Of a DNA stretch of 64,000 nucleotides, positions 5,274-31,601 are shown piece by piece. The notes below the pieces were generated by a model. That model had not been told where the DNA came from. It made no database searches and worked only from the letters and a program-made list of their open reading frames with translations. The stretch is from Octopus sinensis (taxonomy: Eukaryota). How positions within the stretch are numbered: position 1 is the first letter of the stretch; every line of letters starts with the position of its first letter. The stretch lies in the NCBI RefSeq assembly GCF_006345805.1, contig NC_043009.1, positions 310,001 through 374,000 of the forward strand. The letters run 5' to 3'. The translations under genes and the position numbers were made by a program.

Positions 5274-5310
5274 ATGAACGGATTATATTATGGAATATGC
5301 CTTTTATTCG
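5274..5310 (+). CDS. Exon 1 of neuritin-like secreted/GPI-anchored protein gene, copy 1 (MNGLYYGICLLF-, phase 1)
   Basis: Kozak-like accaccATG; 37 nt ending at a G|GTAAGT donor; joins in frame to exon 2 to give the signal peptide MNGLYYGICLLFVIGSAMA; identical in the paralog. Confidence 0.8.
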
Positions 5311-5479
5311 GTAAGTTGTATTAACATCTAAAACTTTTGGAAGAGAATGAGAAACAGAGAGAGAGAGAGAGAGAGAGAGAGGGAGAGAGTATGACGATAG
5401 TGTTTTACATTTCTTTGTTTATAATTTTAAGTGCAAAGCCCGCAAATTTGAATAAAATGGACTTAGTCGAATCGGTTTT

Positions 5480-5697
5480 TTTTTTCGATGACGTAAAAAG
5501 ATACCTTGATGAATTCTTTGCCATCAAACCACCTCAATTCTGGAAAGAGAGTGATTTCAAGTTAAAGGAAAATACGGAGACGCATTGTGCAACAAAATAG
5601 TTCATATCTGGTTGATTAAAAATTTAATGACAAGTAATTTTTGACCTTTTTCTTTCCTCTAAAAATCGGCACGAACTTTCCAGTCAACCCAATATAT
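5480..5697 (+). mobile_element. 3' fragment of the same mariner family (paralog ~56990-57205)
   Basis: DDVKRYLDEFFA..PPQFW peptide plus right TIR tcggcacgaactttccagtcaac. Confidence 0.8.
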
Positions 5698-7094
5698 ATT
5701 TACTCGACAATAAACGTGGCGTGCAAAGAAGTTTATTCTATTCTATTTTATTTCGTTTTGTTTATTTACTTATTTATTTATTCATTTTGTAATATAACCG
5801 AACAATCACTTTATTCTTACTGAACCAGTCATTTCGAACAGTTTTAATTATTTTCTATTTTTTGTTGTGTGTTGAAACTATTCTATTGCCATTTCCAACC
5901 GCGTTCGCGATTTTTCACGAGACATGTTTAAAAATTTGCTAAAAGAGATCAGTGAAAATACTTTTTTAAACATGGCTTAAATTATTAGTGTGAAATGAGC
6001 TGAACAGTGCAGTTAGCGGATATTAGCAGCTAGTAGAACATCAGAACTATAAGACTTTTGCCACCATATTTTTGAAAAGATATACTGCTTTATCCAATTA
6101 GTTTTGAAATTAATAAAGAAGGATGGTTTCAAATTTTGGCATGAGCCCAGCACAATTTTAAGGGAGTGGGACAAGTCAATTAAATCGAGCTTAATATTCG
6201 ACTGGAGCTGTTACTCAATTTATTGACCCCAAATTACTGGCCTCGCACCGAAATTAGAAACCATTAAAAATATTGAGAGTTTAAGGCTGCGCACTGGCGG
6301 AATCAGTAACGAATTGAACAAAATACCAAGCGGCATTTCTTCCGGCTCTTTACGTTTTGAGTTCAAATTCCACCGAGAGTGATTTTTACCTTCATCCTTC
6401 CTGGTTTATTGACCACTGACGTCGATATTATCGACTTATCCCATCCACTGAAACTGCTGGTTTTGTGCCAAAATCTAAAACCGTTATTAATCTAGTGTGC
6501 TGAGTATAACAATTAACATGGAATTACAGTGGAAGGGGTTAATTTTGATTTCTTTTAATCAAGTCTATATCGTAGAACAAGGAGTGGTGGCCTGGGGTGG
6601 CCTGGTATCAAAAAGGTTAACAAATTAAAGGGCTCAATATTGATAACATTATAGTCGAAATATTCAGCAATGAAGGAATGAATGCTTAAAAAAGTATTAA
6701 AAAGGGTAAGTATTCAATACAGACAGCAGTGGATCCTCACCGTTTGACGACGAGGATTTGGTTGTTCTATCAACAGAATGTTTGCCTCTTAATTAGAGAG
6801 TGAATTACTGTGTATTCCTCAGACACGAGCAACTTCCCGTAATTCTCCGCCAGAACCAGCTTCACACATCGAGCGTGACCAGGCCGTACATTTTGATTAC
6901 AGGAAAACTTTGAATTCATGCGTTTGTACATTTTCCGTCTACCCAACTTTACTCATTCGTTATGAACTGGAAGGAGGCTGCCCAAAAAGACATTTGCCCA
7001 GGATCTCAGGCAGAAGGATCAAACGCGTGGCCTCCTTCAAAAGCGGTCTTCTTAAACAATCGGCCATGCTTCGTCTACATATATATTTTTTTTT

Positions 7095-30000: not shown

Positions 30001-31258
30001 CAACGTATAGAAGGTGGTAGAGGCCTTATACAGCTGGAAAACTACTATAAAATAACCACCATAGGACTGCAAAAATATCTACTTCAGAAGGAAGGAAAAC
30101 TGATACAAATAGCGGCAAAACACGAGCAAAACAAAAAACTGTTCTCAGTATTTAAGCAAGCTGACAAATACAAACAAGAAATCATACCACCTAATAAATA
30201 TGAAGAAGAAGAAGAAGAAGAAGAAGAAGAAGAGAAGAAGAAGAAGAAGAAGAAGAAGAAGAAGAAGAAGAAGAAGAAGAAGAAGAAGAAGAAGAAGAAG
30301 AAGAAGAAGAAGAAGAAGAAGAAGAAGAAGGAGATAAAGAAACAACAAAAGCTATAGAACAAATGAAATCCAAACTAAAAATAGAACAGCTACGAACCAT
30401 GATAAAACGATGGCAAGAAAATCCCCTTCATGGTAAATACTGGACTAAACTAAACGCAAAAGAAATAGACAAAGAAAAATCCCAGCAATGGTTGAGAAGA
30501 AACAGAGGGATTTTTAATTGCAGCACAAGACCAAAGCCTCCCCACCAGAAATTATCAAAAACATGTAATGAAAAGAAATATAACAAGTAAATGCAGAATA
30601 TGTGGAGATGAACAAGAAACAATAAATCATATTATCTCTGGCTGCCCAGTCCTCGCTAAGAAGGAATATATTCACAGACATGACAGAGTTGGAACCTACA
30701 TACACTGGAAGCTATGCCAACATTATGGAATAACAACAGAAAAAAGATGGTATAGGCACACACCAGAAAAGATCACAGAAAACGAGAAAGCAACCATACT
30801 CTGGGATATGCAGATACACACAGATAGAGAAATTAAGGCCAACAGACCAGATATAGTTGTCAGAGATCATGCAGAAAAAAATGCTTTCTAATTGATGTAT
30901 CAATACCGGCAGATGACAACGTTTCTCTAAAAGAAATGGAGAAACTTTCAAAATACAGAGACCTGAAAATAGAGGTAACCAGAATATGGAATCTAAAAAC
31001 AGAAACAATTCCTATCATAGTAGGTGCATTAGGCATGATAAAAAAATATTCAGACAAATACATAACAAAAACACCAGGACTTACAAACACATATAACATA
31101 CAGAAAATTGCACTACTAGGCACTGCACACATCCTACGCAGAACACTTTCCATACAATAACCATCAGAGCATCACAACAAATCACAGCACATACCTAAGG
31201 CACACAGAGCTGCGCTCGGTAGTGAAGTGAAAGCACGATATAAAAAATAAAACTACTG
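27048..31258 (+). mobile_element. R4/Dong-like LINE, family A, near full length (A3), ORF disrupted
   Basis: N-terminal RHKWTREEY..Y..W..NKLA.VRR region, RT, knuckle and RLE in fragments 27254-31160; (AAT)n tail at 31259-31478. Confidence 0.92.
30202..30330 (+). repeat. (GAA)n expansion inside the A3 ORF
   Basis: About 43 triplets, versus GAA4-GAT3-GAA at 23152-23175 in A1. Confidence 0.95.
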
Positions 31259-31518
31259 AAAATAATAATAATAATAATAATAATAATAATAATAATAATA
31301 ATAATATTAATAATAGTAATGATAATGATAATAATATAATAATATAATAATAATAATAATAATAATAATAATAATAATAATATAATAATAATAATAATAT
31401 AATAATAATAATAATAATAATATAATAATAATAATAAATAATAATAACAACAATAATAATAATAATAATAATAATAAACACCATATAATACTAACATTGT
31501 ATTTCTCTATATTTTCAG

Positions 31519-31601
31519 ACGTACCCAAACTGTATGCTCATAGCAGTGTCATCTCTGGTGCTTTCATTGCAGCAGTCGCCTTCAAGAAGTTACTTCTTTA
31601 A
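31519..31601 (+). CDS. Exon 4 (terminal), copy 1 (HVPKLYAHSSVISGAFIAAVAFKKLLL*), GPI-signal-like tail
   Basis: Branch-point-like CTAAC at 31491-31495, attttcAG acceptor, phase 1, TAA at 31599-31601, hydrophobic C-terminus. Confidence 0.7.

Follow-up and report, generated by a model that had tools for sequence, protein, structure and literature searches.

A tandem array of four-exon genes in Octopus sinensis encoding putative surface proteins with remote similarity to neuritin and the RGM N-terminal domain

The stretch analysed here, called the window, comprises 64,000 nucleotides of the Octopus sinensis genome (GCA_006345805.1, chromosome CM016871.1:310001-374000). An earlier note had claimed that it holds a hidden four-exon gene for a neuritin-like, glycosylphosphatidylinositol (GPI)-anchored protein, tandemly expanded in a cephalopod. 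By tblastn and exon mapping, four paralogous four-exon genes, named copies A to D, were located in about 130 kb of O. sinensis, all with the same exon structure, which bears out the proposed expansion; the window contains copy A whole and copy B as far as its second exon. The array probably encodes 115-residue surface proteins that are distant homologues of neuritin (NRN1) and of the RGM N-terminal domain (RGM_N), with neuritin-like architecture and gene structure. The exons of copy A and a nearby candidate polyadenylation signal are as follows.

5274-5310, + strand: copy A exon 1, with the ATG and the first 12 signal-peptide codons (MNGLYYGICLLF), start context caccATGa and phase-1 donor gtaagt.
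13590-13694, + strand: copy A exon 2, with the signal-peptide end, the predicted cleavage AMA/E and Cys1-Cys3; acceptor tttgtttcag, donor gtaaga.
17868-17989, + strand: copy A exon 3, with Cys4-Cys6 and predicted helices 2 and 3; acceptor ctttatag, phase-1 donor gtaagt.
31519-31601, + strand: copy A exon 4, with the C-terminal tail VPKLYAHSSVISGAFIAAVAFKKLLL and TAA; acceptor tattttcag.
31762-31767, + strand: candidate polyadenylation signal AATAAA, 161 nt past the copy A stop.

Every exon border of copy A (5274-31601, + strand) follows AG...GT, the donor of exon 2 is in phase 2 within the codon after Cys3, and the TAA stop occupies 31599-31601. Exact spliced mapping of intact proteins, including the Octopus vulgaris orthologue, gave intron phases of 1, 2 and 1, in agreement with the splice sites, phases, start and stop first read for this gene. 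The orthologue (CAI9731510.1, P0001) is an intact, annotated protein of 115 aa, 98 % identical to the repaired protein proposed earlier and identical to the window except at the codon hit by a deletion. Since this O. vulgaris protein matches and three paralogues have the same exon structure, the exons of copy A are no chance assembly. The AATAAA hexamer noted earlier is present, but it is weak evidence, because 204 such hexamers occur in the AT-rich window. The word "hidden" proved apt for copy A only: the protein collection searched has no entry for copy A itself, whereas annotations, as uncharacterised proteins, exist for the orthologue and the paralogues. At 5230-5249, 25 nt upstream of the copy A ATG, a pyrimidine-rich tract ending in cag (ttaattttcctacatacag) resembles a splice acceptor, and the gene may have an untranslated exon further upstream.

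The copies and a duplicated block are arranged in the following way.

Window 5274-31601, + strand: copy A, with a 1-nt deletion in exon 2.
Window 56756 onward, + strand: copy B (LOC115218432, isoform X2), whose locus shares an exact 17,245-nt overlap with the window.
56756-56792, + strand: copy B exon 1, from exon mapping.
62139-62244, + strand: copy B exon 2, full-length (106 nt) and intact; the window ends before exons 3 and 4 of this copy.
Beyond the window, - strand: copy C (LOC115218434), with the four-exon structure.
Beyond the window, + strand: copy D, with a 2-nt deletion in exon 2.
3347-15497, + strand: duplicated block that forms the head of the tandem repeat unit; 54793-63999 is its collinear counterpart (87-96.5 % identity).

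The duplicated block runs from about 2 kb ahead of exon 1 through intron 1 and exon 2 into the first part of intron 2. Positions further along the array are given in the fetched LOC115218432 locus (L002), in which the window position equals the L002 position plus 46755. In O. vulgaris, intact A-, B- and D-type genes are annotated under adjacent accession numbers. The repaired copy A protein found matches in CAI9731510.1, in two LOC115218432 isoforms (77-81 %) and in one O. bimaculoides fragment. Of the two isoforms, RefSeq X1 (P0002) joins copy B exons 1-2 to copy D exons 3-4, 77 kb apart, and its span (L002 10001-87806, equal to CM016871.1:366756-444561) jumps the opposite-strand copy C. It is probably a chimeric model of two genes, forced by the deletion in exon 2 of copy D (L002 84331-84434), which has 104 nt instead of 106 (TACG--CCGAAG) and carries the second of the two indels that break a frame in the O. 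sinensis array. A second exon 3 within copy A was also sought as the source of the O. sinensis isoforms; none was found there, and the isoforms mix copies B and D.

The first of these indels lies in copy A, where exon 2 has 105 nt instead of 106 and a G is absent between 13645 and 13646. The coding sequence as assembled is thus 347 nt long with its frame broken in exon 2, and the addition of one base yields an open reading frame of 115 aa. At the deletion site the window has CAAAGA-TTTAC, as compared with CAAAGAGTTTAT in the O. vulgaris orthologue and the paralogues, and the true protein reading is ECQRVYIPKL. The single-base repair suggested in the earlier note restored the full length, but its residues K-I were slightly wrong.

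Two explanations of the broken frame were considered, an assembly indel and a true, recently inactivated O. sinensis pseudogene, the latter leaving copies B and C as the only functional ones, with D broken too. Outside the deletion, the splice sites, start, stop and all other codons of copy A are intact, and the A- and D-type genes are intact in O. vulgaris. In the alignable introns, 2.0-2.2 % of sites differ between the two species, a rate that predicts about 7-8 substitutions over the 347 nt of copy A coding sequence; only 1 is observed. Because coding substitutions fall so far below that rate, the frame of copy A appears to have been under constraint since the two species split. The pseudogene reading draws on the position of the 1-nt deletion of copy A and the 2-nt deletion of copy D, both outside homopolymers, on the lack of a copy A protein in the searched collection, and on the omission of copy D exon 2 from NCBI isoform X1. 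On the other hand, aligned non-coding DNA of 23 kb shows 60 deletions of 1 nt in O. sinensis (about 1 per 385 nt), so that, if assembly errors strike exons and introns alike, about 0.9 deletions are expected per coding sequence, which fits two indels in four copies. Altogether, inactivation of copy A in O. sinensis seems somewhat unlikely, and the 1-nt deletion is judged, with fair confidence, to be an assembly indel.

The 115-aa precursor begins with a signal peptide (residues 1 to about 19), continues with a domain of roughly 66 residues and ends in a short hydrophobic C-terminal tail, the three parts that had been claimed. The signal peptide, predicted from the sequence alone, has the hydrophobic core LYYGICLLFVIG and A-M-A ahead of E20. 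Cysteines at 21, 29, 47, 56, 64 and 84 give the spacing C-x7-C-x17-C-x8-C-x7-C-x19-C. All six are invariant in an alignment of 15 sequences (A3), the Cys1 and Cys6 columns are at least 90 % conserved in another alignment (A5), and the cysteines are kept across cephalopods and bivalves. AlphaFold2 (AF2) predicted three helices, 23-33, 43-60 and 66-81, with a confidence (predicted local distance difference test, pLDDT) of 55 from 4 sequences and a domain pLDDT of 65-76 from 13 sequences.

The tail comprises 31 residues after Cys6, the same length as that of neuritin, with a 14-residue uncharged run followed by a KKL(L/I/F)L end that is conserved from Octopus to Argonauta and reads KKYIV in the RNA-derived P0127. 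It has no clear small-residue omega triplet. The tail exon is 100 % identical in DNA at 31519-31601 and at L002 27174-27256, 46440-46522 (- strand) and 87724-87806, and the tails of bivalve relatives resemble ordinary GPI signals. By analogy, the octopus tail is taken for a putative GPI signal, and a short transmembrane anchor instead is a real possibility.

An exhaustive profile search identified cephalopod relatives in Argonauta hians, at a further O. bimaculoides locus and in an RNA-derived contig, and distant relatives in oysters (Saccostrea), in mussels (Mytilus, with two tandem domains) and among marine metatranscriptome proteins. Those named in databases all bear placeholder labels: uncharacterised, hypothetical or, in one case, "Saposin B-type domain-containing protein". 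On the RNA-derived contig (L005), a family open reading frame is intronless, which shows that transcription and splicing take place in at least one member. The relatives also include several variants of the plan. Mussels have two-domain proteins (among P0134, P0137 and P0154) and a reduced four-Cys form; proteins from planktonic-eukaryote metatranscriptomes (P0136, P0145-P0152, P0155) have an extra Cys-rich spacer ahead of the tail; and a metagenome relative, P0129, reaches 408 aa. A 92-aa octopus relative (O. bimaculoides P0135/A0A0L8IGH8; O. vulgaris P0143/CAI9732296.1) stops right after Cys6 and, having no tail, would be a secreted form; the saposin label that P0135 bears in UniProt is unsupported by Pfam scans.

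Similarity to neuritin and RGM-N was recovered by profile, alignment and structure searches. When 15 members were scanned singly against 24,736 Pfam families, the sole recurrent families were RGM_N (8 of 15, best E 3.6e-4) and NRN1 (4 of 15). The Pfam gathering scores are 27 bits for NRN1 (PF15056) and 24.2 bits for RGM_N (PF06535). The full-length Mytilus trossulus protein P0134 attained 32.4 bits for NRN1 and 25.8 bits for RGM_N, both summed over two domains, and the best single-domain RGM_N score was 21.1 bits, below the gathering score. A family profile including the bivalves was run against PDB sequences, and its top five matches were all RGM N domains, RGMA being first with E 4.7e-4 and every Cys aligned. 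Foldseek searches of the PDB with two AF2 models likewise placed the N domains of RGMB and RGMC first, with probability 0.69-0.91 and TM 0.52-0.64 (target).

The link with neuritin itself was measured by hhalign, with 17 aligned vertebrate neuritins as the target. Probability rose with the size of the family alignment, from 26 % (4 octopus sequences) through 52.8 % (15 sequences) to 85.7 % (17 sequences; P 5e-6); cephalopods alone gave 72.8 %. At 52.8-85.7 % (P 1.4e-4 to 5e-6), all six family Cys were paired with Cys of neuritin. With the mature domain alone on both sides, the probability fell to 53-54 % (P 1.2e-4); part of the signal thus derives from the signal peptide and tail. The mature-domain score was 25, as compared with 10.3 +/- 2.5 (maximum 19) in 200 column shuffles with Cys fixed, and at full length the real score was attained in 0 of 600 column shuffles; in total, all 800 shuffles, with the Cys columns fixed or free, scored below the real alignments. 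Against RGM, hhalign gave 80 % for the non-cephalopod members and 1 % for the cephalopods alone. Homology to neuritin/RGM-N is remote and transitive, since the octopus protein by itself matches nothing in Pfam or the PDB.

Intron positions in NRN1 of deer and manta ray were compared with those in an oyster gene and two octopus genes, copy A of O. vulgaris and copy B of O. sinensis. In both vertebrate genes, intron 1 interrupts the signal peptide after nt 55 in phase 1, and intron 2 is in phase 2 after nt 200, in the codon directly after Cys3 (...C followed by T/S). Introns 1 and 2 fall after nt 37 and 143 in the octopus genes and after nt 64 and 161 in the oyster gene, in both with the phases and the codon relative to Cys3 found in NRN1. 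A phase-2 intron right after Cys3 in vertebrate NRN1, for which the earlier note had proposed to look, is therefore present in deer and ray. A third mollusc intron, in phase 1 between domain and tail, is absent from NRN1. A phase-1 intron within the signal peptide is commonplace; it is uncommon, by contrast, for introns within a 70-codon domain to agree in both position and phase.

These findings support placing the family in the neuritin/RGM-N group as a divergent branch from molluscs; by Pfam criteria it formally belongs to neither NRN1 nor RGM_N. Another origin to be weighed is an RGM gene truncated by loss of the C-terminal (vWD/GDPH) region, which would make the octopus proteins BMP-binding decoys or co-receptors and no orthologues of neuritin. 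RGM_N is indeed the commoner Pfam match (8 members as compared with 4), the sequence and fold matches in the PDB are to RGM, with no neuritin chain matched there, and the non-cephalopod members align with RGM at 80 % probability. The cephalopod members, however, reach 72.8 % with neuritin and 1 % with RGM, and they share with NRN1 the architecture of one domain followed by a tail as well as two intron positions. A truncated RGM gene is accordingly considered a rather unlikely source of the family, and descent within the wider neuritin/RGM-N group is preferred.

A saposin (SapB) reading was examined and rejected: no SapB Pfam family matched in 15 plus 10 members at E<=10, and the Cys spacing differs. 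In a broader form, the proteins would be a convergent disulfide-rich helical module, for example a saposin-like one, their likeness to neuritin arising from Cys spacing and helical composition; this is improbable, for although all links to neuritin/RGM-N are sub-threshold, UniProt calls O. bimaculoides P0135 a "Saposin B-type domain-containing protein", three-helix bundles are widespread and the Foldseek E-values are non-significant, saposin families are absent from 25 Pfam scans at E<=10 in which RGM_N and NRN1 recur, Cys-fixed shuffles never come near the real hhalign score, the family Cys pattern differs from that of saposin, and convergence does not predict that molluscs and vertebrate NRN1 share an intron position and phase after Cys3.

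Divergence among the copies is uneven along the gene. Among the four O. sinensis copies, exons 1 and 4 have 0 differences in 120 nt, as against 5-8 % in the alignable introns (p <= 0.004). Exons 2 and 3 of copy A differ from those of copies B, C and D by 15-20 %, versus 6-8 % in introns (Fisher 1e-5 to 5e-12), and between B and C and between B and D these exons differ at about the intron rate. In the mature part, the ratio of nonsynonymous to synonymous substitution rates (dN/dS) is 0.6-1.7, and at least 1 in several pairs. Exon 2 of copy D is near-identical to that of copy B and its exon 3 is closest to that of copy A, which points to exchange between copies. A constant signal and tail, combined with a mature domain that diversifies around an unchanging Cys framework, suggest selection for binding surfaces that differ; relaxed constraint together with gene conversion of the flanks may also account for the pattern, as few sequences were compared.

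The same pattern, with identical signal and tail exons, mature exons that outpace introns and dN/dS of at least 1 in several pairs, is familiar from secreted effector families with constant signal and variable mature parts, and the array could on that account encode fast-evolving defence, venom-like or recognition peptides with a function unrelated to neuronal growth; little probability is given to this, since the membrane-anchoring tail is kept in every full-length cephalopod paralogue, the copy number is only four, and the Cys framework has been kept since the cephalopod-bivalve split.

Several results weigh against the reading of the array as genes for neuritin/RGM-N-related surface proteins. 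The repaired octopus protein alone had no meaningful Pfam match at E<=10, just a chance-level one to MmgE_PrpD, and the four-sequence octopus profile had no match among PDB sequences. P0134 exceeds the Pfam cut-offs only by adding its two tandem domains, and no cephalopod member attains a gathering score, the best being 18.7 bits for RGM_N and 15.5 bits for NRN1 (P0127). The Foldseek E-values are 0.26-0.5 on models with a domain pLDDT of just 65-76, because of which the fold matches are indicative only. No direct link between neuritin and RGM_N was found in a Pfam scan of neuritins, with a neuritin profile against the PDB or by hhalign against RGM fragments, the one weak extra Pfam match of the neuritins being nematode DUF19. 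Since the two do not detect each other directly, an NRN1-RGM_N superfamily link rests on the molluscan family as intermediate. The octopus tail departs from the textbook GPI signal in having just 14 uncharged residues and then the conserved KKL(L/I/F)L end; its degree of conservation would be unusual in a signal that is cleaved off, and the tail may therefore have a sequence-specific role. Copy A as assembled is out of frame, dN/dS near 1 could reflect relaxed constraint, and a literature search found no expression data or papers on the array genes.

On the preferred reading, the protein would be made with a cleaved signal peptide, followed by a three-helix, six-Cys domain and a tail for GPI attachment or other membrane tethering. 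Judging from its relatives, it may act as a membrane-tethered, possibly shed, disulfide-locked ligand or co-receptor in cell-cell signalling. A helical face would provide the binding surface, as in RGM-N on BMP/GDF ligands and in neuritin on neighbouring cells, and the combination of constant signal and tail exons with diversifying mature exons would produce paralogues with different binding specificities.

The DNA around the exons contains the following repeats, of which the microsatellites are very long.

23237-30357, + strand: degraded non-LTR (long terminal repeat) retrotransposon pieces in copy A intron 3 (RVT_1, zf-RVT).
40750-46909, - strand: degraded non-LTR retrotransposon pieces (RVT_1, zf-RVT and Exo_endo_phos matches across window pieces).
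51152-54033, + strand: degraded non-LTR retrotransposon pieces (RVT_1, zf-RVT and Exo_endo_phos matches across window pieces).
13267-13541: (AT)139 microsatellite, just upstream of copy A exon 2.
61224-61649: (AT)216 microsatellite, just upstream of copy B exon 2.
17995-18080: (CA)n microsatellite, directly after copy A exon 3.
26759-27005: (AAT)83 microsatellite, in copy A intron 3.

Intron 3 of copy A measures 13.5 kb, versus 6.6 kb in O. vulgaris, and the retrotransposon fragments at 23237-30357 explain both its doubled length and its strong A-over-T skew; they contribute nothing to the gene product. A tRNA-like B-box (GGTTCGATCCC) at 13785-13795, about 90 nt past copy A exon 2, probably marks a tRNA-derived short interspersed nuclear element in intron 2; an ARAGORN scan of the whole window returned 0 tRNA. 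At 49878-50330, a 96-nt tandem repeat (4.8 copies, 82 % identity) gives rise to a spurious 201-aa open reading frame (49785-50390).

Neuritin (CPG15) is a much-studied vertebrate synaptic-plasticity factor whose receptor and structural mechanism are debated, and the RGM N-terminal domain is a BMP/GDF-binding module. To our knowledge, neuritin has been treated as vertebrate-only, and our literature searches found no paper on an invertebrate neuritin, on a neuritin-RGM relationship or on these LOC and accession numbers. If the homology is true, a protostome branch with the architecture and introns of neuritin dates the family before the protostome-deuterostome split, and its reach to the BMP-binding RGM N domain provides a concrete structural hypothesis for the way in which neuritin engages its partners. 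For the study of exon-specific diversification in cell-surface proteins, the octopus array is a tractable case, from an animal whose nervous system is large. The array also bears on the O. sinensis assembly, in which two of the four copies carry frame-breaking indels and one RefSeq isoform is probably a two-gene chimera. A wider proposal is put forward tentatively and with more doubt than belief: that neuritin is not a vertebrate invention, the molluscan family being both its protostome counterpart and the missing intermediate that unites NRN1 and RGM_N in a single ancient superfamily of anchored three-helix signalling domains, and the octopod array, with mature-domain exons under selection for diversity between constant signal and anchor exons, a small set of diversified surface cues for the nervous system or for other cell-cell recognition.

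Among known systems, saposin-like (SapB) proteins resemble the octopus proteins in having a small, helical, secreted domain with three disulfides, and one octopus relative bears their label in UniProt, but the Cys pattern is different and no scanned member matches a SapB Pfam family. The RGM N domain (RGMA/B/C, hemojuvelin; PDB 4uhy, 4ui0, 4ui1 and 6z3m) is the best profile and fold match among solved structures: it is a small disulfide-locked helical domain, all six Cys align, and RGM proteins are GPI-anchored. The octopus proteins differ in being without the RGM C-terminal/partial vWD region and without an autocleavage site; RGM_C gave no match in the 115-aa protein, which ends 31 residues past Cys6. 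Neuritin (NRN1, NRN1L; PF15056) shares the layout of signal peptide, single six-Cys helical domain and hydrophobic tail ending 31 residues past Cys6, an identical central C-x8-C-x7-C, the pairing of all six Cys by hhalign, and the phase-1 signal-peptide intron together with the phase-2 intron in the codon after Cys3. Identity to neuritin is, however, about 25 %, no octopus member passes its Pfam model, and the outer loops of the octopus proteins are shorter (x7/x17/x19, as compared with x9/x24/x27 in neuritin). The octopus genes further depart from neuritin in the extra phase-1 intron before the tail, the KKLLL end and the tandem array with its diversifying domain, and the mussel proteins in having two domains.

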